Shown: in pieces, positions 15,520-33,979 of the stretch
Position numbering within the stretch: the first letter of the stretch is position 1
Layout: each line of letters opens with the position of its first letter
The notes under the pieces: generated by a model
Databases searched by the model: none
The model's input: only the letters and a program-made list of their open reading frames with translations
Told to the model about the DNA's origin: nothing
Assembly: GCA_946965045.2 (NCBI GenBank)
Contig: OX337232.1
Coordinates: 1,922,001-1,986,000 of the forward strand
Length of the DNA stretch: 64,000 bases
Origin: Epithemia pelagica
Lineage: Eukaryota; Protista; Bacillariophyta
Direction: 5' to 3'
Made by a program: the position numbers and the translations under genes

Positions 15520-15803
15520 TCTCGAGGTCTTGCACTTGAGTAGGCAGGGACACCCGGTACTTTGGTAGCAGCTTGGACTTTTCCGCTTTCGTGGTAGTCT
15601 CCTAAATTGGTACAGTGTGAATTTAGCGATCTCTTACAACACAATAAGTTAACTACTTAACAACAATTTTTTTTGACTTTATTGATAATTAAGTGTTTTG
15701 ATCTTGAAATAAGATCAAAATTGCTTTCTGACGTTAAATTAGGGTTTAAACAATAAATGTTTTCGAGTCCGCAAGTCAGAGCCACGTGTGACTTTGAGGT
15801 AAT

Positions 15804-15929
15804 GTCGAAACCACGTCGAAACCAAGTCGAAACCACTGGACACCAACTCGAAACCACTGGACACTAACTCGAAACAAGTGGAAACAAGTGGACACCAACT
15901 CGAAACCAACTCGAAACCAACTCGAAACC
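15804..15929 (+). repeat. Element A left subterminal array, 12 units of TCGAAACCAAC/TGGACACCAAC, 10-11 bp period
   Basis: Unit starts at 15805, 15816, 15827, 15837, 15848, 15858, 15869, 15879, 15889, 15900, 15911, 15922. Confidence 0.9.
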
Positions 15930-16185
15930 TACATACGAGCTCCACCTCCAACCACACCATCGCTAGCACAACAATCAACCTCTTTGAATATGAACAGCTA
16001 CTATTATAGAACATCTACCTAGCTTTGTACACGCTTGTATGTGCCGTAGGTCGTAGGCAATCGTTTCGTTCATCTTCACCATCCTGCATCGATCCATTTG
16101 TCTTCGTTGGTTGTTGTTTCACCGTCCATCAAGGTTTAAAAGGGGCTCTCGTTGACATTGCACCCAGCGACAAAGGTTCCAACGG

Positions 16186-16835
16186 GGGAGTTGATTGTTG
16201 AGTAAGGTGTTGTTGTGCTTGGTGTCAGATTGTTGTCGTTGTTTTCTACAAGTGCTGTAGTTGTTGTTCGTTTGGTGGTAGCCAGTAGTTGATTGTCGCA
16301 TTGGGGCTGTTGGGGCACAGCCATTTTCCGTCCAGTCGTTGTCCTTGTCGCCGCTAGTCATTGTCGCCGCTTGCTGTCGTTGTCATTGTCGCCGCTAGTC
16401 ACTTGCTGTTGTTGTCGTTGCTGCGACAGTCCTTGTCGTCGCAACGTCGTCTCCATCACCACTACTGCTTCCTCCATCCAAGACCACCATTCTTCCCTGG
16501 GAGTTGATTGTTGAGTAAGGTGTTGTTGCGTTTGGTGTTGTCGCAGCATCAGACTGTTGTCGTTGTTGTCTCCGAGTGCTGTAGTTGTTGTTGTTCGTTT
16601 GGTGGTAGCCAGTAGTTGATTGTCGCATTGGGGCTGTTGGGGCACAGCCATTTTCCGTCCAGTCGTTCCGTTGTCGCCGCTAGTCGTTGTCGCCGCTTGC
16701 TGTCGTTGTCGTTGTCGCCGCTAGTCACTTGCTGTTGTTGTCGTTGCTGCGACAGTCCTTGTCGTCGCTACGTCGTCGCCATCACCACTACTGCTTCCTT
16801 GACACTTCCTCCATCCAAAACCACCATTCTTCCCT
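16186..16835. repeat. Two-copy tandem duplication (period 313 bp) of GTT/GTC-rich sequence inside element A
   Basis: GGGAGTTGATTGTTGAGTAAGG starts at 16186 and 16499. The copies stay near-identical to ..CCACCATTCTTCCCT, with small indels. Confidence 0.85.
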
Positions 16836-16872
16836 CCCATGTCCTGTCCTCTTGTACGGACTGGGATGAGGT

Positions 16873-17656
16873 TGTTAGAATTCTCACCGTCTATGGTGGT
16901 TAGATTCTACATCTCATCGATTCCCCATGTCACATAGCCTCGTGCTATCGCATCATGCCATCTAGCTTCGAGCTATGTTCCCTAGCTTTGCGCTATATCG
17001 ACCTATATTTCTTCGCAAATCATGAAAAGTGAGAATAGATTGACGAACTCACTCTCAAGACTAAACTGGGTGGTGCGGTATTACAACGGACGTAAATTTG
17101 GCCGTTGCTCGGACATTATACTAACGCCCTAAGCGTTCGCGCCCGAAATCATCGAGCGCGCCCAAGCGACATCCGAGCGCTGTCGGCATCTATCCGACCC
17201 AACGGTCTAAGTATCCCAAGCACGACACACGATCACGCGAGACCATATTTCCATTCCCACAATCTCCAAATTGTCAACAAGCTGCGCGCCATGAAAACAA
17301 CTATGCCAATCCAAAGCAAGAGCTGTTGACCCTGTATATGTTATCCGTCCACATATACATGTCATGTACATCACATGAATCGACTCCAACTATTCCAAAC
17401 CTGTTGCCGCCAAGAACCTATGACACATGACCCTTGGCAGGACCGAACATTTCACGTAGACCTATCGTAGTAATCAACACACAATCTAACAATATCACCA
17501 TTTATCACATCCTCTTTTGTGGCCCGACTATCCTTTTGATAGACTACGACTTGCTTTCCTCTCTTACCCGTGGAGAGGTTTGTATCGGTTGGTGACTACC
17601 TGATTGTCTGCTCTAACGAGCATTGATGTCCCTACGATTCAGAAAGAATTGTAACA
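16873..17656 (+). repeat. Copia-1 5' LTR
   Basis: TGTTAG...GTAACA; direct repeat of 24475-25258. Confidence 0.97.
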
Positions 17657-17670
17657 GATTAACAGTCTCA
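17657..17670 (+). promoter_or_regulatory. Copia-1 primer-binding site GATTAACAGTCTCA
   Basis: Abuts the LTR terminal CA. The same 14-mer is at 42931-42944 in Copia-2. Its reverse complement looks like a tRNA-Asn(GTT) anticodon arm. Confidence 0.75.
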
Positions 17671-17692
17671 AAGCTTATTTCCTTGTGGTTTC

Positions 17693-18472
17693 ATGGATAC
17701 TAACGAGCTTATCACTCCTGTACGACAGATCTATCGAGCCGACCTGCATTCCGGGCAGCCCGATACCCTGGTGCAGCAGGAACTGGTGCCGACGCCGAAG
17801 ACAGCCAACACATCGGTCAACATCTCCGTCGACAGTTCCAACAGCAACCCATTCGAGACTCCAACCCAGCCTCATGCTCCGATCCCTGCGCCGTTGCTTC
17901 GGCCCCCGAGTCTGCCTCGTCGGCTCGTCCCTTCTCGATCCCGTCGTACCACCCGGTTGATTGCTGATCATATCAAGTACTTCCGTCAACCAACTTCTTC
18001 GACCTTCGATCCCGAGATCATCCGTGGGGAGACCCAGATCGAACGCCAGTTCCAATCGGTGACCCACATCGTCGACCAAGAAGACATTGAACGTCTGAAC
18101 GACCAACTTCATCGCTCTCCGAGGCGTCGCCTCATCTTGGCCGCCCTCTCGGGCAACCCCATCCGTACTGTCCACCTCCGCTTCCTAACCTTCGAGCGCC
18201 CAACTGGATACTACAATACCATCTACGTCGTGAACACGACGACTTGCCCTTTGCCTCCTAACGTTGTACGCCTAGATAACTACGTTGCCTACATCCACAA
18301 GGTCCATACCATCGAGGACCATCGTGCAACTATCTTCCCTTTGCGTACCGAGGTCGAGAACCACTTGGCTGAAGGTGATAGCCCTTCTTCTGTTGCTTGT
18401 GCTGCCCCATCTGAGCCTGGAAACGACTCTGATTATTCGGAAGAGAGTGGAGATTCGGAAACCGAAGCTTAA
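17693..18472 (+). CDS. Copia-1 extra upstream ORF (ORF0), 259 aa, unknown function
   Basis: Intact ATG ORF between PBS and gag, homologous to 42969-43709 (NPFxTP, RRLxPxRxRRT, HIxxFRxPT, FERPTxYxxTI). Confidence 0.8.
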   Translation: MDTNELITPVRQIYRADLHSGQPDTLVQQELVPTPKTANTSVNISVDSSNSNPFETPTQPHAPIPAPLLRPPSLPRRLVPSRSRRTTRLIADHIKYFRQPTSSTFDPEIIRGETQIERQFQSVTHIVDQEDIERLNDQLHRSPRRRLILAALSGNPIRTVHLRFLTFERPTGYYNTIYVVNTTTCPLPPNVVRLDNYVAYIHKVHTIEDHRATIFPLRTEVENHLAEGDSPSSVACAAPSEPGNDSDYSEESGDSETEA

Positions 18473-18792
18473 TTACTCATAGTTAACTCCCGTCCTCTCA
18501 AAACCTTTCCAAGACTTAAACTCAACGCACATCCGGGTACCCTTGGTCGCACAACACGCCACACATTCCCGTCAAATCGCGAAAATTTGGCGAAAATTTG
18601 TTGAAACTCGGCGAAAATTTGTCGGAATCAACGGAAATTTCCAGGAGTCGCACATCACAACACACATCCGGGTATCACATACGTGGTACATACGTGGCAC
18701 ACGTGGTACATCCGGGTTCACATCACATCACACATTAAATAAACCACATCACACCGCACATTAAATAAACATCGAACCAACCAAATAACACC

Positions 18793-21700
18793 ATGGATCC
18801 TCAATCACCCAAGACACCTACGACTCCTAAGGGAGAAGATAACCAAGACAATGTCTCGAACACAGACCTATTCGACCACATCATATTTACTGTCTGCCAA
18901 TTCTTTACCAAGGAAAGGGCCGACTACTTAATGAAGTGGATGAAATACCATGGTTTTGAGAACATTACCCATGTTATCTCGTATATGCAAACTAATACCG
19001 AGGAATCCATGAACGAACTGACACAATACAAGGTCAACAAACAGACACATGATCTACAAGGCCCCACAAGACAGCAGATCAAGCTCTTGGCTTATTGGGC
19101 CATATACAAGACCAACGAAATTCAAGACGAGCTATCCAATAGCGACTGGATGAACCTAACGAGGAAAGAGTTCAACACTTGGAGGATCAACACAGATTTC
19201 TCTAAGGGACCACCTAGCCAAGTTCCAGTCTCGCCAATGAAGTCACCGTCATCTGTGAAATCTGTCAGCACAGTTACTACCGCATCCCAATCTCAACAAG
19301 ACCTTACAGCATTCAGAAAGGGAACTAAGCGTGACGCAACTGCGTATGAGGTATTCAAGGATGAACGATACTACGATTCATTCTGGCGTGTATTCAAGAC
19401 TACAGCTAAGGCTCAAGGCCTATCCAACGTTCTGAATTTCAAATACACACCACCCCATGATGATGAGTATGCCGAAGAACTTTTTCAAGAGCAACAAGTA
19501 TTTCTTTACTCCGTTCTTGTCCGTATCATTCAGACTGACCAAGGTCAAGCCTATGTAAGTGAACACGAACATGATGAAGATGCACGTGCCGTATTGCAGA
19601 AGTTACACTCTTTGCATACCGAATCCGACCTAGCAAAACGAGAAGTCCTCCGTTTAACCAACTACATTTCCAATCTACGTCTTGACGACACATGGCGCGG
19701 AACAACACGTCAATTTCTTCTACACTTTCAAGAGCAGCTACGTCTGCTAGACAATCTAGTGACGTTATCTGATCGCATCCCTGATCATACCAGGATGACC
19801 TTTCTCATGCAAGCTGTAGAAAAGGTACCTGATCTCCGCCGAGTCAAGATCTTGGATAATGTGGTGAACACCAAATCCGGTGCAAAATCCCTTTGCTATC
19901 AATCAAACTTCCGTCTCCTTCTAGACGCAGCTTATGACCATGATCAAGCAACCCAGTCATCTGTTCATAGTCGCCGTCGACATGTCAAACAACATGAATC
20001 ACTATATGGCCAAGATACAGATGCCGACATAACCTCACAAGATGATATGGAGTATCATGTCCACAACACCAAAGTGGCATCTGAATCTCCATCCTCTTCA
20101 TCCAAGGTTAGTCTACCGCGTGACCTATGGTTCAAACTTTCTGAAGAAGATCGCAAATTGATCATTGAGTATAACAAGATGATTCAAGCACCTGCATCAA
20201 CAACACCGAGGAAAGTGCAAACACATGCCCTCGACATTGATCCGGAACCTGATCCTGACCCCAACCAAGTTGCATCTGATGACGACTCACCTGGCGCAGT
20301 CCCTGAGCATCCAGATGATTCAGATCCGGTTACACAATTTATCAACCAAGCCATGACGACTGATATCAATCACCCGGCAACTGACCTGACTAGTGTTCTT
20401 TCTAACGCCAAGTCCAAGACAAGCAAGAAGGTTACTTTCAAAGCCAACATGCATAAACAAGCAGGACATGTTCCACGCTATTTGTTTTCCAGGAAATCTA
20501 CTTTACCAGGAAATCAATTGATTGACCGTGGTGCTAATGGAGGACTTGCTGGTTCTGACATGCGCATCCTTTCTAAGACTGGCTGCCATATCACCATTGT
20601 GGGTATTGATAACCATGAACTTACTGGACTTCCTGTCGTCACATGTGCCGCAAAGTTTGAGAGCAATGATGGACCTATTGTCGGCATCTTCAATGAATAT
20701 GCTTATTATGGAAAGGGCTTATCTATCCATGCTCCTGGTCAATTCGAGCATTTCGGACTTGCTGTTGATGAACGATCTGTTAAAGTTGATGGTAAACAAC
20801 GCATCACTACACTTGATGGTCGTGCTATACCCCTTCACATCAAGGATGGGTTAGCCTACATCCACTCCTTGGGTATGCCCAGCAACGATGACATGAATAC
20901 CTTACCTCAGATCATCTTCACGTCACCCGACACATGGGATCCTGGTGTTCTGGACCATTCGCATTCTCCCACACCCTCTGACAATGATCCTGATTGGAAA
21001 CACGTCAAGACTGATGGTAGTATGTCAAACCATCCATATGACAACTTTGGGGAGTACACTGATCGTGTTGTTTGTAACCTCAATCTCCTTTTGGATCTCC
21101 CATACAATCATGGACCTGACGACGCACCCTTCTTTTCTATCTATGCTGACGCAGAAGGTAATGATCCTACACTTCATGCCTCTGTCCACCGTCGTTACCA
21201 GGAAGCGTATGACTGGAAGAAGTTCCGTCCATTCTTTGGTTGGCAATCTGAAGATGTTATTGCCGATACGTTCAAGCACACTACACGTAATGGTAGCATT
21301 ACTTTTGACCACGACACCCTCAAGAAACATTTCAAGGCTCGCAATCCGGTCCTTAATATACCTCGACGTCATGAACCCGTTGCTACTGACTCGGTTTTCT
21401 CCGACACCCCTGCTGTTGACCATGGCGGTAAAGTCACACAAATCTTTGTTGGTTGAGATACTCTGGTTACTGATATCTATGGGATCAAGTCGACCAAACA
21501 GTTTGTCAATACTCTTCAGGACAACATCCGGTTTCGTGGTGCCATGGAGACTCTTATCAGTGATGGTGGTTCATCTCTCATCTCTCAAAAGGTCAAAGAC
21601 ATTCTTCGCACTTTGCTTATTGGGGAGTATCGATCCGAACCTTATCATCAACACCAGAATAAGGCTGAAAACCGTTACCAGACCGTCAAACGCATGACCA

Positions 21701-24480
21701 ACGCTCTCATGAATGCCACTGGTTGCCCTGCCAACACCTGGCTTCTTTGCCTTGAGTATGTCTGTGACTTATTGAACCATACATCATCACCCACCCATTC
21801 CGGTCGCACTCCTCTTGAGGCTCTCTCCGGACGCCCACCCGACATTACTCATCTCTTGTTCTTTCCTTGCTGGGCTGAGGTTTACTACCGTGTCGACCCC
21901 GCTGAACCCAATTCTGGTTCATATCCATCTTCTTCTGATGAGAAACTTGGCCACTGGGTTGGTTTTGCTCACAACGTTGGTGATTCTTTTACTTGGAAGA
22001 TTCTCACCCAGGATAACCAGATAATCTACCGTTCTGCCGTTCGCCGTGTTGAATCCACTACACCTAACCTACGTGTGGATCGACCTTCAGGGGAGGATTC
22101 GTCTGAGAAGGATGACAACGATAAGCAAGCTGACACTGTCTTCATTTGCAGTGATAGTGAAGATCCATCCAAACCAATGCCCACGATCGATTTTGACGAC
22201 ATGATAGGACGCACATTCCTATGCGACACAGAAGAAAATGGGGAGCGACACCGTGCACGTGTCATCAAACGAGTCATTGATCTTAATGAAGAAGCAACGA
22301 AACAAGAAGAACGTGTCAAGTACATCTACCGAAAGACAAATTCTGATGTTGATGAGATGATATCCTATAATCAACTCATGGAGTATATCGAACGAGATAA
22401 CCAAGCTCAAACCTCTGGAGATAATCTTTTCAGGTTCAGGGACGTCATTGCCCATCAAGGCCCACTGAACACAACTGATCCAGATTACAAGGGGAGCAAA
22501 TATAATTTGCTTGTTGATTGGGAAACTGGGGAGACTACCTATGAACCTTTATCACTCATCGCCAATGATGATCCGATCACTGTAGCAATTTATGGAAAGA
22601 AACATGGTTTACTCAACGAACCTGGATGGAAGCATTTGAAACGTTATGTCAAAACAAGCAAACGTCTCATTCGAGCAGCCAAACAGTCAAGGATTAAACA
22701 AGTTCACCATTCCGTCAAGTATAAGTTTGGATTCCAAGTACCACGCAATTATGAGGAAGCTGTCGCTCTTGATAAACAACATGGCAACACAAAGTGGCAG
22801 GATGCAACAGAATTAGAATTGTCACAGATCCAGTCCTACAAGACATTCAAGGATTTTGGGAAAGCCATCTTCATTAAAGGGAAAGTATCCAATGCACCTG
22901 AAGGATATCATAAGATACGTGTACATCTTGTCTTTGACGTAAAACATGATGGACGACATAAAGCAAGACTTGTCGCAGATGGACATCTCACAAAAGAACC
23001 TGTTGAGACAATCTATTCAGGTTTTGTTTCCATTCGCAACCTCCGCATTGCCTTATTCCTGGGTACTTTGAATGACTTGGAAATATGGGGAGCAGATATT
23101 GGAAACGCATATCTTGAAGCCTTGACAGGGGAGAAAATCTTCATTGTCGCAGGACCTGAATTCAAGGAATTAGAAGGTCACATCCTGATTATATACAAGG
23201 CACTTTATGGATTGAAGTCATCAGGCGCACGCTGGCATGATGTCTTATTCAATGTTTTGACAGACATGGGATTTTCACCAAGCAAAGCAGATCCGGATAT
23301 CTGGATGAGGAAAGCACCTGGAGAAGACTGTTACGAATACATTGCCGTATACGTTGATGACTTAGCCATTATTTCTACTGATCCTGGGAATATCTGCAAG
23401 ATCCTGAAGGAGAAATACAACTTCAAACTCAAAGGAGATGGACCTATCGATTTCCACTTGGGATGTTGTTACACCAAGGATTCTGATGGAACATTAGTAG
23501 CAGATCCAAGATGCTACATTGGTAAGATGATGGACACTTTCGAACGAATCTTCAAGGAGAAACCCAAGAAAGCCAAAACACCTCTTATTGGTGGAGACCA
23601 TCCTGAATTGGATGATTCTGAGCTCCTTGATGAAGAAGGTACTAGCCATTTCCAAACTCTGATTGGACAACTCCAATGGGTGATCACTATTGGTCCTTTT
23701 GACGTCTTCACCGCTACAATGACGCTGTCACGCTTTCGTGCTGCTCCGAGGAAAGGACATCTTGATAGAGCCAAGCGTATCTATGGATACCTTGCACATC
23801 TCCCAGAAGGCGCAATCAGATTTAGAATTGGAGAGCCTGATTATTCAAGTCTTCCTACCCAAGAATTTGATTGGACTCGCACTGTCTATTCGAATGCAAG
23901 TGAACGTATTCCTGAAGACTGCCCAACACCTCTTGGCCGCTATGTTACCACAACTCATTATGTTGATGCCAATCTCATGCATGACATAGTCACTGGTAAA
24001 TCCGTCACTGCTGTTCTACATTTGTTGAACGGAACACCTATTGACTGGTACAGCAAGAGACAGAGCACGGTGGAAACTGCTACCTATGGATCTGAGTTTG
24101 TGGCTGCAAGGACAGCAATAGATCAGATTACAGAATTACGACATTCTCTCCGCTACCTTGGAGTACCTATCCGAGAGCGAAGTTACATGTACGGAGATAA
24201 CAGATCTGTTGTGCTCAATGCAACCGTTCCTCATTCCATACTATCCAAGAGACACCATCTTCTGTCATACCACCGAGTTCGTGAAGCCATCGCAGCAAAG
24301 TATGTTGCATTCTACTGGAAAGATGGAAAGACCAACCCTGCCGATATCCTTAGCAAACATTGGGATTTCGTATCTATTTGGCCCATGCTCAAGCCATTGT
24401 TGTTTTGGAAAGGAGAAGTTCAAGACCTCAACAAATCCAATGATGACAAGGCTGAAACAACGAGTTGTGGGGAGTATTAG
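18793..24480 (+). pseudogene. Copia-1 gag-pol with one in-frame TGA at 21454-21456
   Basis: Protease LIDRGANGG, integrase ATDSVFSD/LISDGG/NKAEN, RT HKARLVADG/YVDD, RNase H DANL/GSEFVA/ADILSK. Track ORFs 18793 and 21544 share a frame; Copia-2 has CGT (Arg) at the stop position. Confidence 0.92.
24465..24474 (+). promoter_or_regulatory. Copia-1 polypurine tract TTGTGGGGAG
   Basis: Immediately precedes the 3' LTR; identical 10-mer at 49701-49710. Confidence 0.8.
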
Positions 24481-25258
24481 AATTCTCACCGTCTATGGTG
24501 GTTAGATTCTACATCTCATCGATTCCCCATGTCACATAGCCTCGTGCTATCGCATCATGCCATCTAGCTTCGAGCTATGTTCCCTAGCTTTGCGCTATAT
24601 CGACCTATATTTCTTCGCAAATCATGAAAAGTGAGAATAGATTGACGAACTCACTCTCAAGACTAAACTGGGTGGTGCGGTATTACAACGGACGTAAATT
24701 TGGCCGTTGCTCGGACATTATACTAACGCCCTAAGCGTACGCGCCCGAAATCATCGAGCGCGCCCAAGTGACATCCGAGCGCTGTCGGCATCTATCCGAC
24801 CCAACGGTCTAAGTATCCCAAGCACGACACACGATCACGCGAGACCATATTTCCATTCCCACAATCTCCAAATTGTCAACAAGCTGCGCGCCATGAAAAC
24901 AACTATGCCAACCCAAAGCAAGAGCTGTTGACCCTGTATATGTTATCCGTCCACTTATACATGTCATATACATCACATGAATCGACTCCAACTATTCCAA
25001 ACCTGTTGCCGCCAAGAACCTATGACACATGACCCTTGGCAGGACCGAACATTTCACGTAGACCTATCGTAGTAATCAACACACAATCTAACAATATCAC
25101 CATTTATCACATCCTCTTTTGTGGCCCGACTATCCTTTTGATAGACTACGACTTGCTTTCCTCTCTTACCCGTGGAGAGGTTTGTATCGGTTGGTGACTA
25201 CCTGATTGTCTGCTCTAACGAGCATTGATGTCCCTACGATTCAGAAAGAATTGTAACA
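24475..25258 (+). repeat. Copia-1 3' LTR (begins TA instead of TG)
   Basis: Direct repeat of the 5' LTR, followed by TSD GAGGT. Confidence 0.97.
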
Positions 25259-25831
25259 GAGGTTTCAAACTTCCGGTTCGGACAATGTGACGGTGGCCGA
25301 TGCCATGGAGTTTGTCCAAACGTGCTTTCGGGCACAAAACGACAACAACGACGCTCGAATACTCACAGCCGATACCGTAGCCAAAGCCATGGGTGCCGTG
25401 AAACGTCTCGATCAGATTGTCGAGCAAGTGAAACAAGACACCTAGCAGAGACCATCCGCCTCCTCCCATCGACACATTCGACGAGGATTGTCCGTCGAGA
25501 TTCAACCCTATACACCACCACCCTCGTCAAGGCTATTGATTGATTGTTGCGTATGGTGTTGTTGTTGTTGTCGTTGTCGCCGTCTGATTGCCGCTTTTCC
25601 ATTTCCCGTTCACTGTCGTTCGATAGGACCAGCAGTAGGAGGGTAGAAAGACGAGAAGGCCATAGCCGAGACATGCGTATCACCTTGTTGCATCTATGGT
25701 GCTTGTTGTTGTTGTTCGGGAGGTCGTTGCTTGTTGCTTCCTCGTTGTTGTTGGTTCCATAGTTGTTGGGTCAAAACGATCCGTCTGTTGCGCGACATGG
25801 TTGATTATTGCGTTCGCAGTTTGTAGAGGGG

Positions 25832-25990
25832 TCGAAACCAACTCGAAACCAACTCGAAACCAACTCGAAACCAACTTGGAAACCAACTCGAAACTAGTGG
25901 ACACCAACCCGAAACCAGTGGACACCAACTCGAAACCAGTGGACACCAACTCGAAACCAGACGTTAAAACCGGGACCAACCCGAAACCAA
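25832..25990 (+). repeat. Element A right subterminal array, about 12 units of TCGAAACCAAC type, same orientation as the left array
   Basis: Unit starts at 25832, 25843, 25854, 25865, 25877, 25888, 25898, 25909, 25919, 25930, 25940, 25951. Confidence 0.9.
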
Positions 25991-26421
25991 CACGACTCAA
26001 AACGAGAAAGCTTTAGCGATCGTCATAATACAAGACTCAGATGTGACACAAAAAACGACTAATTAACAATTCGTTTGGTCTTGAACACGTGTCTTTGACC
26101 CGAACCCTATTGTGCATAAAATAAAATAGCTAGCCCTCGCAAAATTAGCGATCAGCCCTAGCTACCCAAAAGGAGTTTAGGTAAAGTCATCCTGGGACAC
26201 CCGCTACTTTGGTAGCGGTATGGACTTTTCCGCTTTCATAGTAGTCTTCCTATTCAGTACAGTGTGATTTCAGCGACTACCTACAATACAATGAGAATTG
26301 TACTTAAGAATTCGATTTCCGTTGATTACAAGTATTTATGAGACTTGATCTTGCATCAAGACCAACATTTATTATGACCATTAATATAGGGTTTCGCCAA
26401 AAAAAGCCTTGACCTGCTGGC

Positions 26422-26591
26422 TCGAAACAATGTCGAAACCACGACACAACGTCGAAACAAAGTCGAAACAAAGTCGAAACAAGGTCGCAACAAAGTCGAA
26501 ACAAGGTCGAAACAACCCGAAACCAACCGAAACAAAGTCGAAACAAAGCCGAAACAAACCAAAACAAACTCGAAACAAAGTCGAAACAAAG
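26422..26591 (+). repeat. Element B left subterminal array, about 16 units of TCGAAACAAAG
   Basis: Mostly 11-bp period (26452, 26463, 26474, 26485, 26496, 26507 ...), ending just before the ORF1 ATG at 26594. Confidence 0.9.
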
Positions 26592-26593
26592 CC

Positions 26594-27171
26594 ATGCCGC
26601 CACGAAGGTCTGAGTGGATTGACTGGCGTCGCAGTGCAGCACGAGCCATCCTTATTCGAGATCTTGAGCCATGGATGCAGTTCCGGCTGACCACTTGTTT
26701 GTGTTCTACAAGAAGCTTCCCGAGTTTGCGAATGTTCCTTTCGATCAATTCAAGGAACGACTGAAGAACCACCGCAAACAATCAAACAACGCGCAGGAAT
26801 TGGTGGACCGTGACCACAAGGCGCACCATGTTGACCGTCACGTCCATCCACGAAAGGACCGGAACTGCTGTGGAGAGCTGGTCTTCGACGTCCATCCAGC
26901 AAAGAAGCTTCTCCGGATGGACGTGGCCAATGGCGTTCACTTGAAATTGACGCCCATGGCACTGAGGAAGACGCGTCCCGCCTATATGGCATTCAAGCTA
27001 GAAATCTTCAAGTTTCGAATCTACCAAGAAGTGAGACGAGTGCGCTACTTCAACTACTTGCGGCTCAAGGAAGAGGAAGCCAAACAGAAGCTCAATCTAC
27101 CTGCTGTCTCTCCAATGGACGAATTGATGCGACGCCGAGAACTTGCAAACCACATCCTAGCCTACAAGTAA
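26594..27171 (+). pseudogene. Element B ORF1, accessory protein with two internal helical repeats, frameshift near 26670
   Basis: ATG 26594 reads MPPRRSEWIDWRRSAARAILIRDLEP and continues in the 26671 frame (YKKLPEFANVPFDQFKERL; HPAKKLLRMDV..TRPAYMAFKLEIFKFRIYQE). Confidence 0.6.
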
Positions 27172-27219
27172 AACATGGTAGAAAACCAATTCTCAACTAC
27201 ATTGAATTTATGGATGAAT

Positions 27220-28143
27220 CTACGGCTCAAATAGGAGACTTGTGCCATTGTCAAGTGCATACTGAACTGTCACAGCGACTGCACGAAATGCTATGCCGTG
27301 TTTCTCGTCCGAATGCCTTTATGTCTGGTTGAGGCATCCAAAAGTAGCCATTTTTCCATTGAAACTTTCATGCCGAAGACGGATCCGGCTCTTGAGGTTA
27401 TTGGCTTGTTTGGAATCTTCATGGGGATTGGGCCAGGATATTTTCCCACTGTACTCCTTCTTAATGTACCCACGATCAGCCACAATCAATTTGCCTGGCT
27501 TGAGTCGTTCCAACACGCCGGACCGTTCGAGCATCTCCAAGTCCCCCATTCCCCCACGCACGGGGCCATATATGTGAACACACCTCGGTCGATGTGCCGC
27601 CAAAACAATTTGGTATTTCAGAGCACCGTGCGCATGCTTGTGAGAGCAGTTCCCACGATCGAACGGAAGCATTTGAGTCTTGTGCTTGCGCTCGAAAACT
27701 TTTTTGTCGACACCATCCACGGACAACACATTCACCTCAGACTCGGGACTGTCAAGAATTCTCGGCCAGAAAATTACCTTCTTCTGGAGAAACGCAATTT
27801 TCCGAATCCACCCCCACAAATGCTCTCCTCTCGCATAGCACTCACACATGTCAAAGCGATCACTGAGCTGCTCACTATTTCTCGTGTAGTTGTAGAGGAA
27901 ATAGTGAGCAACCATGAACATCTTGAATCCTCCTCTTTTGATTTCATTCGTAGATAGTAGTTCCTCGCCATTGTCGTCTGTTGCGTGGCATAGGTCGAAC
28001 CATTGCGCAGCAATCACCAACGGGTGAGACCCGTAGTGCTTCGTAAACTTGAGTCGTCGTCGTTCCAATGTCAATTTGCCCGCATCATCCACATGAAGAA
28101 GCCGTAGGCCCCTTTCGAGGACTTCCGACGGTTGAAGAGACAT
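27220..28143 (-). pseudogene. Element B DDE transposase (PIF/Harbinger/IS5-like), one premature TAA at 27319-27321
   Basis: Motifs SVDG, SHKH..LKYQI, YGP, VADRGY, RLRHESFN. The frame continues past the stop: T*RHSDEKHGIAFRAVAVTVQYALDNG..* to 27220. Confidence 0.88.
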
Positions 28144-28564
28144 TCTTTGATTGTTGAAAATGTGGTGACGAATGCAATGATGGATTCTTGGGGACAAGAA
28201 CTCTATTGGCACTCGGGAAGGTCACTCACTAGTAGGTAGGTTTCTGTCTTCTGTCACAAAAGTGTTCAATAACTCCACGCCTGTCTCACACGGCGGGGGA
28301 CCCCCATGATTAGGACCCGTGGGTAGTAGGAGAGACACATGATGCGCCTGCAGATTCACGAGTTCTCAACTCGTGAGCACAAGCATAGAAGGCTGCGCCT
28401 AAATAGACATCCTATTACATATGCACATGACAATCAAACGATGTTTATTTGTTATCCATTGATGTAGATGCCAAACCAGGATTGGCAATCTCGGTAGGTA
28501 GACGACTCACTCGCTCGATCCCAGGAGATTGTTTTCTCTCCGTTTGCCCATTCGACAAACAAAC

Positions 28565-30007
28565 ATGGAGATCTCACAAGACGAACTTTCGCAAATCAAC
28601 GAAGAGGAAGATTGGGTTGGTGACTCTGTCAACAGTGAGGCCCAAGATCAGCAAGAACAACCGTCGATTGGAACCTTGCAACGAAAGAAGCCGGCGCCAG
28701 GTGGATTGAGTGCTGAGAAAACCAAGACCCTCCTTGAAGCCTTTGAACTGTCCGGCGAGACAAGGGAATCATTCGACCTCTGGGCACTGTGTTCAGCCAA
28801 CCCGACCACATTTGGAGCCGAAGGAACCGTGCTTCGCAGGCAAGTGCAGCAACGTTGGGCAAAGTGCAAGGGCCGCTCAATCAGGGCCTACATTGCATAC
28901 TTGAAAAAGATTGGTGTGACACCCGGTCCCAAAAGCCTCAAAGAGATGAATAAGAAACCAGCCTACCCCGACAAACCAGCCTTCTCCGACAACGCGTCGA
29001 CCGCACCGTCCACCTCTGATGAAGAGATCATCGTTCCCGACGAAGAAGAAGAAGACCCATATGCGATGGTTGGGATTGGAAATCCCTTTGCAAATGACAA
29101 CGTGGACCAGCTTGAAGCAGACTTTGGCCAGGTTTCTCTTGCCAACGACAGGAAGCCTGCTGCAAGGGCCAGCGTCCCATCTCTCCCGGCGGCCCAAAAC
29201 CAAGCAGCTGTGAGGATGTTTCACACTCCACCCCGTCCTGTTGCGCATGCTGGTGGCTTTAACCCTGGCCAACAACAGCATCGCTTCGGACGCCTTTCTC
29301 CTCTTGTTGCCCAGGCCGCCCATACCAACGTGGCACATGCCTTTGTACCCACTGCCTGGTTTGTGAACCAGAATGGTACAGTCAAGAATCCATGGGTGAT
29401 TCCGATCCATGTAGACAAGATGGCCGAGCGACACCGCGAGTTCGATGTCCAGTTCGTCGAAAATATCAACCAAGACGGATTTTTCACTCGCAGCGGTTTT
29501 CACATCCACCGGCCCGTTGCCTGCCCGGATATGAACGACTGGGAAGCGGACATCCCAACGGACGACTACGACGAGATGTGGAGAGGACGACTCATCCGTT
29601 TCAGGGGCCCCGCTCAAGATTTTTGGATTCGTGATACGGAGCGCTACCATACGGGGATTGGCAGGGAGTCGAAGATCAAGTGTGACGCAACTTTCAACGC
29701 ACACAGTGCAACTGAGGTTGCGATTGAAGAGTCCAAAGAACACTGGCGTGCTAGTGCCTACTGGATCATGGTTTTCCCGCCCGGCGTTCAGCTTGAGAAC
29801 AAGATTTTCTCGTTGGACGATAACATCGTGCCAGTCACCAAGAACCCTCTCAAGCTAAAGAAGGACCACCCAGAAAACCTCTTCAACAAAGAAATCCTGG
29901 CCATGACCCTGTTTTGGCGCATTGCTCTCAAGGGAGGCAAAAAGATTGGTGGTAAGCAATCTGAGAAGAAGAAGGAGGCCAAGGCCAAGAGCATGTTTGA
30001 AGACTAA
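28565..30007 (+). CDS. Element B ORF3, 480-aa accessory protein of unknown function
   Basis: Intact ORF divergent from the transposase. Helical N-terminal domain (LLEAFELSG..LWALC..FG..G..LRRQVQQRW..Y..YLKKIGV), disordered linker, beta-rich C-terminal domain, K-rich tail. Confidence 0.75.
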   Translation: MEISQDELSQINEEEDWVGDSVNSEAQDQQEQPSIGTLQRKKPAPGGLSAEKTKTLLEAFELSGETRESFDLWALCSANPTTFGAEGTVLRRQVQQRWAKCKGRSIRAYIAYLKKIGVTPGPKSLKEMNKKPAYPDKPAFSDNASTAPSTSDEEIIVPDEEEEDPYAMVGIGNPFANDNVDQLEADFGQVSLANDRKPAARASVPSLPAAQNQAAVRMFHTPPRPVAHAGGFNPGQQQHRFGRLSPLVAQAAHTNVAHAFVPTAWFVNQNGTVKNPWVIPIHVDKMAERHREFDVQFVENINQDGFFTRSGFHIHRPVACPDMNDWEADIPTDDYDEMWRGRLIRFRGPAQDFWIRDTERYHTGIGRESKIKCDATFNAHSATEVAIEESKEHWRASAYWIMVFPPGVQLENKIFSLDDNIVPVTKNPLKLKKDHPENLFNKEILAMTLFWRIALKGGKKIGGKQSEKKKEAKAKSMFED

Positions 30008-30091
30008 CCAGTACGCCCCTAGTAATTGACTACATAGTAAAAGCGAATTCTTTGTTTGAAATGCACTACTCCTATTAGTTATTCATGTATG

Positions 30092-30550
30092 CTAATGCTG
30101 TCCCTTGAACTTGATGCGACGCCAGCGGGCCTTTTCATTGGGTAAGGCATTCTGTGCAGCAATGGCTCTATTGAGGTATGACAAGAACAGAGTTGCAATT
30201 CGTTTTCCTCCTTCTCCTGATCCTGAGATCTCCTCGAACTCAGCCATTTTCCTTGTGAGCACCACAAACATCTCCATAATGTCTGCATTCTCAAAAAGCA
30301 TTGCCTCCTCCTTGTTTGATGGGAGCTGGACATCAGCCTCCATCACAAAACTTGTGTGTAGAATCCTTGTTGCCTTCAGAACCGTAGGACTTGTTTTCAC
30401 TTGGATGATCACATACGTGTAGAAGCGAGTGCATTCCTTCGCCGTGTCCACCCATGCTCGCAATCCCTTGTAGTCTCCCAGCACAATCTTGATCCTTGCC
30501 CCCTTTCTTTCATTGATGGGTGGAAGATTCGACGATTTCTTCTCCACCAT
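30092..30550 (-). CDS. Element B ORF4, 152 aa, KOW-like N-terminal motif
   Basis: Intact ATG ORF. GARIKIVLGDYKGLRAWV resembles the KOW pattern GxxVxVxxGxYKGxxG. Confidence 0.62.
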   Translation of the reverse strand: MVEKKSSNLPPINERKGARIKIVLGDYKGLRAWVDTAKECTRFYTYVIIQVKTSPTVLKATRILHTSFVMEADVQLPSNKEEAMLFENADIMEMFVVLTRKMAEFEEISGSGEGGKRIATLFLSYLNRAIAAQNALPNEKARWRRIKFKGQH

Positions 30551-30691
30551 ATTTGTCTTGTCTGTTGCTTTGTTTTATGACTGTCCCCGCAGTGAACAAG
30601 AATCTCCCCTCTCACTCGCTCGAGTCGCTCATCGTGCCACCATTAGCGACATTGAGCGACCATGGTTGATTATTGTGTTCGCCATCATGGG

Positions 30692-30850
30692 TCGAAACAA
30701 ACCGAAACAAAGTCGAAACAAAGTCGACACCAGGTCGAAACAAAGTCGAAACAAAGTCGACACCAGGTCGAAACAAAGTCGAAACAAAGTCGAAACCAGC
30801 CGTTAAATACGGGACCAACCCGAAACAAGACATGACACAAACTCGAAACA
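30692..30850 (+). repeat. Element B right subterminal array, 10+ units of TCGAAACAAAG, same orientation as the left array
   Basis: Unit starts at 30692, 30702, 30713, 30724, 30735, 30746, 30757, 30768, 30779, 30790. Confidence 0.9.
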
Positions 30851-31310
30851 TTTAGCGATTATCCCAATCCACGACTCAGTTGCGACATCGAAAAAGAAAT
30901 TGTTAACTTAAATATTTGATTTAAGCACGTGTCGTTACATTACTATAATAAGAGTACAGAAAATAAAGCTAGCTAGCTAAAACAGCGATCAGCCCTAGCT
31001 ACCCAGTTGCCGGAATAGGTAAAATTCTCTACCAAAATGCCGGGTGTCCCTGGGGGAACCAAAATGCCGGGTGTCCCAGTGTTCGTGTCTCCGCTCACTA
31101 TCTCAAGATTGTGAGCTCGACTCTGAGGGCTGGTCTTATCGTGCGTGAAATTTCACACATTTCACCCAAAACCAGCTTCCAAATGTCACAGTTTTTAGGG
31201 TGTGAAAAACTTGGGTCCAATCGATGGCTACGAGTGTGAAATCGATTTCACACAGCCGTAGCCTTCCCCCAAGGGTCATTCATGTGCTTCCAACAACCAA
31301 ACAAATAAGC

Positions 31311-32636
31311 ATGATCTATTCCAAGTACCTAGAGGCAGAGGCAATGGAAGAAGAAGGTGACAAAGAAGACTTCCTTCACTTACTCAAGCTGATAGAATTT
31401 TATTCCCTTGCCAAGAAGCACCGAAGAAGCAGAAGCCCAATCCCTCGGTCCCAAACTCCTAAGGTTGAACAACTCAAGTGGTCGACCTTTGTGAGAGCCC
31501 AAATGGCAAGCGACCCAAAAGACTTTGAGAAGAGCATCAGAATGCCTTTAGAGGCTTTTGAAGCTCTTCATGAAATTCTTAAAGAGTCTCTGAACAAAAA
31601 TGAAGAAATGGGGGCTTTACGTGGTGGTGCAATCGCTTCGGAATTACGACTGTACTTGACAGTCCGATACCTTGGTGGTGGTGCAATGCATGACATTTGA
31701 CGGATTTTTGATATAAAAAGGTCCACCTCCTACCATATAGTCCGCGACGTCTGCCGAGCCATAGTCCAGTGTGATAAGTTGGGGTTTAGCTTCCCAAGAA
31801 CAGAGGAGGATTGCCAAAAGGCTGCCCTTGGTTTTTGAAGCATCTCTTTCGATGAAGCAATCATCAACTGCGTTGCTGTTGTCGATGGATATTTACTTCA
31901 CATTGAACAACCTAGCAAGAGAATTGCAGGCAATCAACGTCAATATTATTCCGGTCATTATAGAAAATTTGGCATCAACATACAAGCCGCGTGTGATCAT
32001 AATTCACAATTTATCTACTTTGCTCTTGCTGGACCTGGTAGCCAAAATGACAAGGTGGCCATTGACCAATGCTCATTGGGTCCCTTAATTGACACTTTAC
32101 CCGAAGGATATTGTGCTATTGGTGATGCTGCATACTATCCTACCGAACGGTTGGCACCTATTTACTATGGCGTCAACCGGGACGACCCTCTACACGACAA
32201 CTTCAACTTTTTTGCCTCTCAGCTGCGAATCAGAATTGAGATGGCGTTTGGTCTCATGCAGATGAAATGGAGGTTCCTGCAGCAGGCACGCCAACCAACA
32301 AAGAATCTTCCTATGTATGTAATGGCCATAGCCCGGCTGCACAACTATGTTGTTAAGTACCGGTTGGAGCAAGGCAGCACACTTACTGAAATGATGAATG
32401 AAGATCACGGACAAGATGGTGAGAGTGGACAAACACCCGTACTACCATCACAACCTGTGGATGATAATGGCAACCCTATGCTCTACGATGATATGGGCAA
32501 TGTCGTACGAAGGCCCTTGCCCAAGGGGCATTCCATGACAAGGCATTTGATGGCTGTTCGGATCCAGCAGAAAAACCTAGTCCGTCCTCTGCGCAACACC
32601 ATTCAACGCGATGCCGAAGATCAAGAAGATGAATAG
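31311..32636 (+). pseudogene. Element C HARBI1-like DDE transposase with two in-frame TGA codons (31698, 31836)
   Basis: Motifs FEKSIRM, LRLYLTVRYLGGG, AVVDG, FGINIQAACD, IGDAAY, RIRIEMAFG..KWRFL, ARLHNY, all in one frame. An alternative ATG is at 31224. Confidence 0.9.
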
Positions 32637-32657
32637 AAAATCATTGTTATATAATAA

Positions 32658-33979
32658 TTATAGTCCTAGATCTTTGACAACTTCGTCGATCCTTGTTTGA
32701 AGTCTCATTTTCATGTCCTCATTGTCTGTTTTGCTGAGAGCCACAGTGAGAGTACTGAATTCATTGAGTAATGCAGCTCTCTCCATACGAGTCTCGCGTT
32801 TCTTGGCATTGTCAGCCATCACATCCGTAGCTGAAGATATGGCAGAGGCAATTTTATCGTCTGTTTGAGCTGTGGACATGGAGACAGGAGTTGTAGCTCG
32901 AGACGAAGCTCGAGATGAAGGGCGAGACCACACTTTACTGGAAGAAAGAGGAATATCTGCACTGTCTATAGTCAACGTTGGGGCCAGAGCTGTCGTGAAC
33001 TTGGTGGCAAACTCGGGAACTGCTTCACTTTTGGAAAAGAAGTAGAAGGCAACAAACTGTGTCATAGAGGGCCCCCCTTTGACCTTTGACAGGGCCTGGC
33101 GTGTAAAGTCCCAGGGGTCGCTTGAGTGACTGCCACTTGCATTCATTGCCCTTTGGATGTTCTTTCGTACATTTAAGAGTGCCTTGAACAAGTCCGACAC
33201 CTCTTTTTCATTTACTTTGTAAGTATTCTTTATTGATGGGTCCACTCGGCTCAAGATGGCATCTAGCACGTGGTGGTTGTATGCAGCGTTCACTGCATCA
33301 CTTTCATTGCTTTTTCCAATTTGCCGTACTTGTCGGAAGACTCTATTGCTGCTTCTACTTCTTCGTCAATGATATCATCATTGTCATCGACGAGGCGTTG
33401 GGTGAACGTCGCTGTCGCCTCTACTGCCTTCTTTGCAGGAGAAGAATCAGCTCCATTGACCGCGTCCACGACTTCCTTCCAGAACCTTTGATACTGTGCA
33501 CCACTGCCTGATTCTTGCACATCCCGAGACCTGCTATCGTTGAAGGCCATGAAATCATCAATGAAGTCTCTGTGGAACAACACATTGATGATCCGACATT
33601 GTGTGGAAGGAATTTGTTCCAAAGTTTTGTTAATGCTTGACTGATTGCAACTTGTTTTAAGGATATGGAAGCGAATCTCTGTCTTCGTTAAACTGGCTTT
33701 GGTGATCCCAATCTTCCGCCCTAGCCTCCTTAGTTGATAAGCTGAGAGATCCTTGTCCAGATGTGTCTCATTATTGTCCTTGGCAATGGTACATGCCACT
33801 TCGACTTCTTCATCGTCACCCTCACTGTTCTTGATTATCTTCTTCTCTGTAGTCAGCGTATAGTCTTCCAGGTTCAGAGAGTCTAGTCCCTGTAAATACT
33901 CAGGTAATGGCTTCTCTACTCGCTTGGGCTTCTTCTTAGCAGGGCCATCCTCCTGAGGTGCGGTGGACAACGGCGTCAT
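32658..33979 (-). pseudogene. Element C accessory DNA-binding protein (SAP-like motif plus Myb/SANT-like region), frameshift near 33310
   Basis: Motifs LSAYQLRRLGRKIGI..LTKTEIR and RIINVLF..F..FN..R..FWKEV. One extra A in the A5 run joins ORFs 33290-33979 and 32658-33293 as KYGKLEKSNESDAVNAAYNHH. Confidence 0.7.

Follow-up and report, generated by a model that had tools for sequence, protein, structure and literature searches.

A four-gene transposon, probably of a young PIF/Harbinger family with CWG target sites, in the diatom Epithemia pelagica

In canonical PIF/Harbinger transposons, such as Ping/Pong and Harbinger3_DR, a second element-encoded protein is required and non-autonomous derivatives occur (PMC2836001, PMC4482050); their TSD is TWA (PMC4482050). 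NuwaI, a group of the PIF/Harbinger superfamily (PHIS) that has been described from animals only, has two genes and is marked by a CWG TSD (Han et al. 2015, PMC4482050). DNA transposons with extra genes include ISL2EU, which has YqaJ (PMC4482050), KolobokP, which carries a His-Me endonuclease (PMC9587614), and fungal elements that carry TET/JBP (PMC12730594).

The element described here is probably a copy of a young PIF/Harbinger (PHIS) cut-and-paste family with three accessory co-factor genes. When matched on the published description of TSD, TIRs, and length, its closest known group is NuwaI, with which it shares a PIF/Harbinger-type DDE transposase, a 3-bp CWG TSD, short GG-starting TIRs, and a length of about 4.5–4.9 kb. 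Since the CWG TSD is what defines the published NuwaI group (PMC4482050), this part of the finding is not new. In contrast, NuwaI consists of a transposase and a Myb/SANT protein and its TIRs usually start with GGG, whereas the present element has four genes, none with a detectable Myb/SANT domain, and TIRs that start with GGA. The likeness to canonical PIF/Harbinger elements lies in the DDE_Tnp_4 transposase, the 3-bp TSD, and the derived non-autonomous copies; the differences are that the latter have one Myb/SANT or MADF partner instead of three partners with other predicted folds, and that long subterminal arrays of 8–11-bp units set the present element apart. ISL2EU, KolobokP, and the fungal TET/JBP elements are likewise TIR transposons with a stable linkage between the transposase and extra conserved genes. 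They carry, however, one extra enzyme of a recognizable family, whereas the three families here are apparently non-enzymatic and unnamed, and they also differ in TSD and transposase subgroup.

The element lies on contig OX337232.1 in a stretch of 64,000 nucleotides, the window, to which all coordinates refer. It is delimited by two CTG copies of the 3-bp TSD (26192–26194 and 31050–31052) and by imperfect 21-bp TIRs that start with GGACACCCG. The left TIR, GGACACCCGCTACTTTGGTAG (26195–26215, plus strand), forms the same end in 8 full-length copies, and its pairing with the right TIR (31029–31049, minus strand) amounts to 84% complementarity over 25 nt, flanks counted. The right TIR of the window copy falls 7 bp below the family consensus length, and its first 19 bases equal the adjoining TIR of the element into which this copy has inserted. 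Toward the interior, a left subterminal array of about 16 units of the 11-bp GTCGAAACAAA (26420–26594, plus strand) stops at the start codon of ORF1 (26595–27171, plus strand; 198 aa in intact copies), which is followed by the DDE transposase (27223–28143, minus strand; 307 aa in intact copies). A divergent intergenic region of 421 bp (28144–28564), which presumably holds promoters for both directions, separates the transposase from ORF3 (28565–30007, plus strand; 480 aa). ORF4 (30092–30550, minus strand; 152 aa) is, like ORF3, intact in the window copy, and upstream of it lies a right subterminal array (30690–30802, plus strand) of about 10 units of the same 11-bp GTCGAAACAAA, which point the same way as those on the left (direct orientation). 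The resulting layout, two convergent pairs flanking the divergent region, is as an earlier note on this DNA had described it, with ORF1 and ORF3 on the plus strand and the transposase and ORF4 on the minus strand. That note had also taken 26195–31049 as a single TIR/TSD-bounded unit, a view borne out by the boundaries shared among copies and by an empty site.

The surroundings of the element supply this empty site. Host element A (15548–26191, plus strand) is a gene-less B′-type shell that also has a copia-type insertion, and is an older relative of the studied element; its outer TSD is CAG (15545–15547). Its last 25 bp, including its right TIR, are found on the other side of the studied element (31053–31077, plus strand), followed by a CAG TSD (31078–31080). 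The window is heavily nested: the copia-type element and the studied element (element B) both sit within element A. Insertion of the studied element took place 23 bp from the right TIR of element A, and excising it in silico together with one CTG restores the right end of that element, which then matches uninterrupted B′-type ends (L012, L038) and constitutes a paralogous empty site. A composite origin, through separate insertions or through an ordinary Harbinger that captured host genes on a single occasion, would draw its appeal from the unusual gene number only and from the heavy nesting of the region. Against such an origin, which is extremely improbable, the empty site gives back the host sequence exactly, as expected of one insertion and not several, and the unit has the same boundaries in 8 copies and contains no internal TIR/TSD pairs.

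The window copy is non-autonomous because of two mutations. A 19-bp deletion at about 26669 shifts the frame of ORF1, whose open piece in this copy spans 26671–27171, and an in-frame TAA interrupts the transposase at 27319–27321 (codon 275), where intact copies have Trp275. The four-gene set claimed for this locus is made up of real genes, but two of them, ORF1 and the transposase, are broken here, and the window copy is a slightly decayed member of a recently active cut-and-paste family.

Eight full-length copies are present in the genome, all with CTG or CAG on both sides. Copies L002–L005, situated on four contigs with different flanks, are 99.9–100% identical and have all four genes open. 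The intact master copies have been mobile recently, and the existence of near-identical intact copies suggests that the family may still be active. Shorter copies with both element ends also occur in the genome and may be internally deleted. Genome-wide, CWG precedes every match to the TIR pattern (41 of 41), and a reversed control pattern gave 0 matches; the boundaries are not accidental. The middle base of CWG, read on one strand, is the same in 15 of 16 paired ends, which marks CWG as directly duplicated rather than as belonging to the TIR. Insertion is strictly at CWG, with a 3-bp duplication.

The transposase of intact copies matches the Pfam profile DDE_Tnp_4 (PF13359) with an E value of 1.7e-11 and 44.4 bits (cut-off 24.8), and that of the window copy scores 40.3 bits. 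The catalytic triad, D143, D223, and E259, is invariant among 7 diverged relatives, down to 40% identity. The element thereby combines DDE_Tnp_4, a DDE triad, and TIRs with a 3-bp TSD, the features by which PIF/Harbinger (PHIS) elements are recognized. Instead of the TWA TSD of PIF/Harbinger sensu stricto, it has CWG at every end, the mark of NuwaI, and CAG is found in a distant relative, L069; TIRs start with GGACAC in family B and with GGATAC in L069. A second gene of the Myb/SANT type was sought with Pfam, and no Myb, SANT, or MADF match was obtained for ORF1 (122 members), ORF3 (97), or ORF4 (20). When all four proteins and the 97, 122, and 20 family members were scanned singly, Pfam reported the transposase domain and low-complexity noise only. 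A neighboring element, C, taken as a canonical comparator, encodes a distant DDE_Tnp_4 transposase, whose catalytic C-terminal part shows about 21% identity. The Myb/SANT gene that had been ascribed to this neighbor was not confirmed: its second gene has no Myb match in Pfam.

All four genes occur together in families B, B′, 2, 3, and others of this genome, in the metagenome contigs L031–L037, and in Cylindrotheca closterium (L071); in other families and species, the proteins are 24–49% identical. When contigs were chosen by their ORF1 only, the four-gene linkage was present in 3 of 3 cases. Among relatives that have the four genes, four different gene orders are found; in L069, for example, the order is ORF1 (minus), ORF3 (plus), transposase (minus), and ORF4 (plus), between TIRs of 660–760 bp and with a CAG TSD. 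The three extra protein genes are linked to the transposase in each of the diverged relatives examined, regardless of how the genes are ordered. dN/dS ratios of 0.06–0.16 overall (ORF1, 0.16; transposase, 0.10; ORF3, 0.16; ORF4, 0.07) indicate that all four genes are under purifying selection. The two halves of B and B′ differ in synonymous divergence (about 0.6 versus 1.7–2.0), so that modules can recombine and are not strictly co-inherited.

Co-occurrence at such protein divergence, together with purifying selection on all four genes, refutes a one-off capture or nested insertion. The multi-component lineage proposed in the earlier note is thus substantiated by recurrence across families, a second diatom species, and metagenome contigs, and the homologues proved to be linked to the transposase rather than single-copy host genes. 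The further proposal that orphan protein families may be explained as transposon genes also gains ground, as the families of the accessory proteins are indeed sizeable and unannotated: at E ≤ 0.001 the ORF3 family has 1075 cluster representatives, and the ORF1 family comprises at least 294 proteins. A literature search returned no paper on this gene set.

Structure prediction offers a tentative view of the three accessory proteins. ORF1 is strongly basic (pI 10.2), and its model (pLDDT 94.5) consists of two tandem three-helix modules, both of which match DNA-bound homeodomains, GARP/Myb, SANT, the Tc3 bipartite domain, and FF domains (Z 4.2–6.3). All fold matches reported here have Z < 8, a range that, according to the tool, small helical or sandwich domains often reach without being related. 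ORF3 comprises a basic helical N-domain (aa 47–130; pLDDT 82–91), an acidic low-complexity linker, and a C-terminal beta-sandwich (aa about 265–470) modeled with moderate confidence (pLDDT 60–76). Of the 46 best fold matches of ORF3, almost all are HSP20/alpha-crystallin or CS/p23 domains (Z 4.7–7.9), and the C-domain is possibly an HSP20/CS-like sandwich; no sequence-level match to HSP20/CS was obtained. In ORF4, single members gave sub-threshold matches to KOW (E 0.069), KOW5_SPT5 (0.056), and SH3_KIN17_C (0.2), which weakly suggest a KOW/SH3-like N-terminal half; among 20 members no KOW profile matched this half above threshold. Its C-terminal half looks helical when the sequence is judged by eye. 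A language-model atlas gave a KOW lead for ORF4 at 0.79, with every score under 0.9. Nothing meaningful emerged when profiles of the three accessory families were searched against PDB sequences, and Foldseek searches of the ORF1 and ORF3 models against the PDB returned zero matches at E ≤ 0.001. Profile–profile comparison of ORF3 with ORF1 (probability 0.2) gave no relationship, so that an origin of the ORF3 N-domain by copying of the ORF1 module was discarded.

These models modify the statement that none of the extra ORFs looks Myb-like. It holds at the level of Pfam matches, but ORF1 is predicted to have a tandem three-helix fold of the homeodomain/Myb/FF class and the ORF3 N-domain to be small, basic, and helical. 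ORF1 is likely the DNA-binding partner for the family-specific 8–11-bp subterminal arrays. Alternatively, the N-terminal helical domain of ORF3, and not ORF1, would be the equivalent of the Harbinger Myb-like protein, with ORF1 in another role. This domain has a basic pI of 9.5 and is predicted with confidence to be helical, the DNA-bound Reb1 Myb-like repeat (Z 4.5) and TrpR are among its best fold matches, and a helix with RRQVQxRWxKxK recalls, in an alignment read by eye, the third helix of Myb/SANT-like domains. The assignment is nevertheless doubtful, given that 0 of 97 family members match Myb, SANT, or MADF models, that the fold matches, from a whole-protein search, do not rise above noise, and that ORF1 is the more basic and better conserved protein, with two modules that look DNA-binding. 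The two readings are not mutually exclusive.

With ORF1 as the favored binder, the arrays become its candidate targets. Arrays with a family-specific unit are present in B, B′, family 2, family 3, L031, and L069; the units are 8–11 bp long, and their spacing is 10–11 bp in most families, approximately one helical turn. Their orientation is direct in family B and inverted in L069; a direct orientation is unusual for transposase-recruiting sites and counts against such a role. The favored model would have the three accessory proteins act as transposition co-factors that replace the single Myb/SANT protein of canonical Harbingers. ORF1 would be a sequence-specific binder that coats the subterminal arrays and marks the ends for the transposase, and ORF3 and ORF4 would serve as adaptors for the assembly, import, or regulation of the complex, roles that we infer from predicted folds. 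As the arrays are situated immediately upstream of ORF1 and ORF4, their binding could feed back on the expression of both genes. In its full form, to which we give roughly even chances, the model describes a distinct, hitherto undescribed PHIS group in diatoms and marine metagenome contigs that transposes via a four-protein machine: a minimal DDE transposase, a tandem three-helix binder on helically phased arrays, an HSP20/CS-like scaffold, and a KOW/SH3-like protein, with the Myb/SANT partner wholly replaced.

The accessory genes could instead be dispensable for cut-and-paste and serve persistence, through anti-silencing, chromatin modification, or steering into other transposons, as suggested in the earlier note; a targeting or anti-silencing role is speculation. 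ORF3, with its acidic linker and CS/HSP20-like domain, and the KOW/SH3-like ORF4 do look more like chromatin or chaperone adaptors than like factors that cleave DNA. Target choice beyond CWG is hinted at by two independent insertions, in opposite orientations, at the same site of a 91%-identical repeat, and by the position of the window copy in the end of a related element. The remaining insertion flanks, however, have no sequence in common, and all three genes are strictly kept in every lineage and gene order, as expected of core machinery, which makes a role in persistence alone an unlikely explanation.

To our knowledge, one or two proteins suffice for nearly all cut-and-paste transposons. 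The maintenance of four genes through divergence and reshuffling of their order suggests a transposition or host-interaction machinery more elaborate than is known for the superfamily. With this element, the CWG-targeting branch would extend beyond animals. Three sizeable unannotated families from diatom genomes and marine metagenomes are assigned to mobile elements, which improves gene annotation; if the four-protein group outlined above is real, the accessory families, which make up more than a thousand sequence clusters in public data, would be transposon genes now annotated as hypothetical host proteins. A family that is possibly active could become a genetic tool for diatoms.

Between terminal inverted repeats (TIRs) at 26195-26215 (GGACACCCGCTACTTTGGTAG) and 31029-31049 (an imperfect inverse of the left TIR), each with a CTG flank outside, the interior of the studied element is filled by four open reading frames: ORF1 (+), a transposase (-), ORF3 (+), and ORF4 (-). 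A 421-bp divergent spacer lies between the inner two, which bears out the two convergent pairs and divergent center described in an earlier note on this DNA. Only the transposase has a Pfam match (DDE_Tnp_4). An 11-bp unit, GTCGAAACAAA, is arrayed just inside both element ends in the same orientation at each, with ORF1 directly downstream of the left array and the right array upstream of ORF4. The window copy is 1.3% diverged, and because its ORF1 is frameshifted by a 19-bp deletion and a TAA replaces Trp275 of its transposase, it is a decayed, non-autonomous member of an otherwise intact family (family B). At its right TIR (window 31029-31077 region), 7 bp of the family consensus are missing, and over its first 19 bases this TIR does not differ from that of the host element, element A, 27 bp off, suggestive of conversion or repair involving the two neighboring ends.

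A copy search of the window's own assembly (60.5 Mb; G000) recovered eight full-length copies at 97-100% identity, together with diverged subfamilies and shorter copies, possibly with internal deletions, that have both element ends. L002-L005, four copies each on its own contig, are 99.9-100% identical and have all four genes open (ORF1, 198 aa; transposase, 307 aa; ORF3, 480 aa; ORF4, 152 aa); with these intact copies as the source of the proteins, neither a spliced gene model nor stop read-through had to be assumed. CTG or CAG is found on each side of all eight full-length copies. The studied element is a genuine multi-copy transposon that has been active recently. A separate locus, G000:C18:2139362-2154622, contains four left-type TIR ends on one strand at ~5,080-bp spacing, with CTG before each, and represents a tandem array of a unit holding one element end rather than ordinary paired ends.

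The CWG target duplication proposed in the earlier note is confirmed by element ends, paired ends, and a paralogous empty site. CWG precedes each of the 41 places in the genome that match the TIR pattern, and the reversed pattern, used as a control for the genome search, gave 0 matches. Of 16 paired ends, 15 carry the same middle base on one strand, as expected of a duplication; an extended inverted repeat would show the reverse. The studied element interrupts element A (window 15548-26191 plus 31053-31077) 23 bp short of that element's right TIR, and in-silico removal of the insertion and one CTG rebuilds the terminus of element A, matching uninterrupted ends of the related subfamily B' (L012, L038). 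Element A has B'-type ends and no genes of its own, and is older than the studied element; coding remnants of the four genes were looked for in it, and none were found. Also inside it is a copia-type retrotransposon, whose ORFs at 18793-24480 encode 887 and 978 aa, and three nesting levels occur within 16 kb at window 15548-26191 and the studied element.

The accessory ORFs might be host genes unlinked to the transposase, or the unit might conceal nested insertions. Every ORF3 homologue in the genome for which flanking DNA was examined has a homologue of one or more of the remaining three genes beside it, two or three in most cases. Identity to family B declines in parallel across the proteins: in B', 85% for ORF1, 89% for the transposase, 55-60% for ORF3, and 85% for ORF4; in family 2, 59%, 64%, 44%, and 42%, respectively; and in family 3, for the three proteins compared, 63% (transposase), 37% (ORF3), and 39% (ORF4). 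The earlier note had proposed looking for all four genes together in relatives, and they co-occur in this genome, in metagenomes, and in contigs from elsewhere. Metagenome contigs keep the gene order of family B (identities of 47, 49, 32, and 30% in L034). On L069, a contig from another assembly, the complete gene set, arranged ORF1- ORF3+ TNP- ORF4+ (TNP, transposase), is enclosed by 660-760 bp TIRs starting GGATAC, with CAG flanks; a Cylindrotheca closterium contig (L071) has the order TNP- ORF4+ ORF3- ORF1+. Three contigs picked solely for encoding an ORF1 relative all carry the full gene set, one arranged in a fourth order. In the comparison of B with B', each of the four genes shows purifying selection (dN/dS: ORF1, 0.16; transposase, 0.10; ORF3, 0.16; ORF4, 0.07). 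Unlinked host genes are thus rejected by linkage to the transposase across families and assemblies, and hidden nested insertions by the empty site, the shared boundaries, and the co-occurring genes; linkage and purifying selection support the multi-component transposon lineage envisaged earlier.

Synonymous divergence between B and B' (L003, an intact family B copy, against L010/L047/L038) is ~0.6 for ORF1 and the transposase and 1.7-2.0 for ORF3 and ORF4, an inequality suggesting that element halves were swapped between lineages to give a recombinant mosaic. In both B'-type copies of this genome, L047 (G000:C9:3212796-3217831) and L048 (G000:C5:954015-958952), ORF3 is broken by one stop each (a different stop codon) and by a frame change at a position common to the two, close to residue 350; ORF3 is intact (489 aa) in L038, a near-identical element from another assembly.

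The transposase triad D143/D223/E259 is invariant, with ~140 residues before the first catalytic Asp. The ORF1 family has at least 294 members, and a Pfam scan of 122 of them gave no match. The AlphaFold model of ORF1 (pI 10.2), computed with the family alignment as input, is very confident (pLDDT 94.5) and comprises two tandem three-helix modules, each closed by a long basic helix. Foldseek returned nothing significant for this model; structural matches of the modules, at only Z 4.2-6.3, are DNA-bound homeodomains, GARP/Myb, SANT/SLIDE, the bipartite Tc3 DNA-binding domain, and FF. ORF1 is longer in L071:8001-8876 (291 aa) and in L072:3409-4206, from another relative (257 aa); in both, part of the protein matches the ORF1 profile twice, which points to internal duplication of the three-helix module. 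On the modeled fold, ORF1 is probably the main DNA binder.

The ORF3 family comprises 1075 cluster representatives at E<=0.001, with no Pfam match among 97 members scanned. Its N-domain (residues 47-130) is basic and confidently helical in the model; that this domain holds the DNA-binder role, alone or jointly with ORF1, seems rather unlikely. An acidic low-complexity linker leads to a C-domain modeled at pLDDT 60-76, whose best structural matches are nearly all HSP20/alpha-crystallin and CS/p23 sandwiches (Z 4.7-7.9). About 25 ORF4 relatives were gathered; they share a conserved motif, G-x-I-K-h-x-x-G-x-Y-x-G-x-x-G-W, that resembles KOW in sub-threshold matches only.

Transposition is of the DDE cut-and-paste type, targets CWG with a stagger of 3 bp, and, as judged from sequence comparison, depends in an evolutionary sense on three co-inherited proteins. 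ORF1 would act as the end-recognition factor, binding the subterminal arrays, whose unit varies by family (GTCGAAACAAA, GTCGAAACCAA, CGATACAACC, TGGAAACAAC, CGAGACAGT, AATCCACA) and whose spacing in most families is 10-11 bp, approximately one helical turn. ORF3 and ORF4 would serve as adaptors in assembly, import, or regulation. Alternatively, the accessory genes may serve silencing avoidance or target choice. Target choice beyond CWG is hinted at by the position of the window copy inside the end of a related element and by two copies, L003 (G000:C8:2266510-2271402) and L007 (G000:C8:2533892-2540086, with an additional insertion of ~1.3 kb). These differ by 1.3% and occupy exactly the same CWG of one repeat, facing opposite ways with respect to it, and look like independent insertions at one preferred site; the two repeat copies share only 91% identity over 870 bp.

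PIF/Harbinger elements, as defined by Han et al. 2015, combine a TWA target-site duplication (TSD) with a Myb/SANT partner, and NuwaI elements have a CWG TSD, TIRs usually starting GGG, and the same two-gene content (PMC4482050). The studied element shares the transposase domain and CWG TSD with NuwaI; compared by published description, NuwaI has two genes, including Myb/SANT, whereas the studied element differs on both counts. NuwaI has been reported from animals only (PMC4482050), whereas the studied element comes from a diatom genome. Next door, neighbor C (window 31224-33979) had been taken for a Harbinger with a transposase and a Myb/SANT protein. It does encode a DDE_Tnp_4 transposase, in several pieces and with only ~21% identity to the transposase studied here; neither of its two ORFs on the minus strand (211 and 229 aa) gave a Myb/SANT match, and that half of the description is not borne out. 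Harbinger-like elements in Thalassiosira receive only a mention (PMC2806351), and the literature searched here contains no account of a Harbinger-type element with four genes or of the ORF1, ORF3, and ORF4 families. The studied element bears on both transposon biology and diatom genome annotation.
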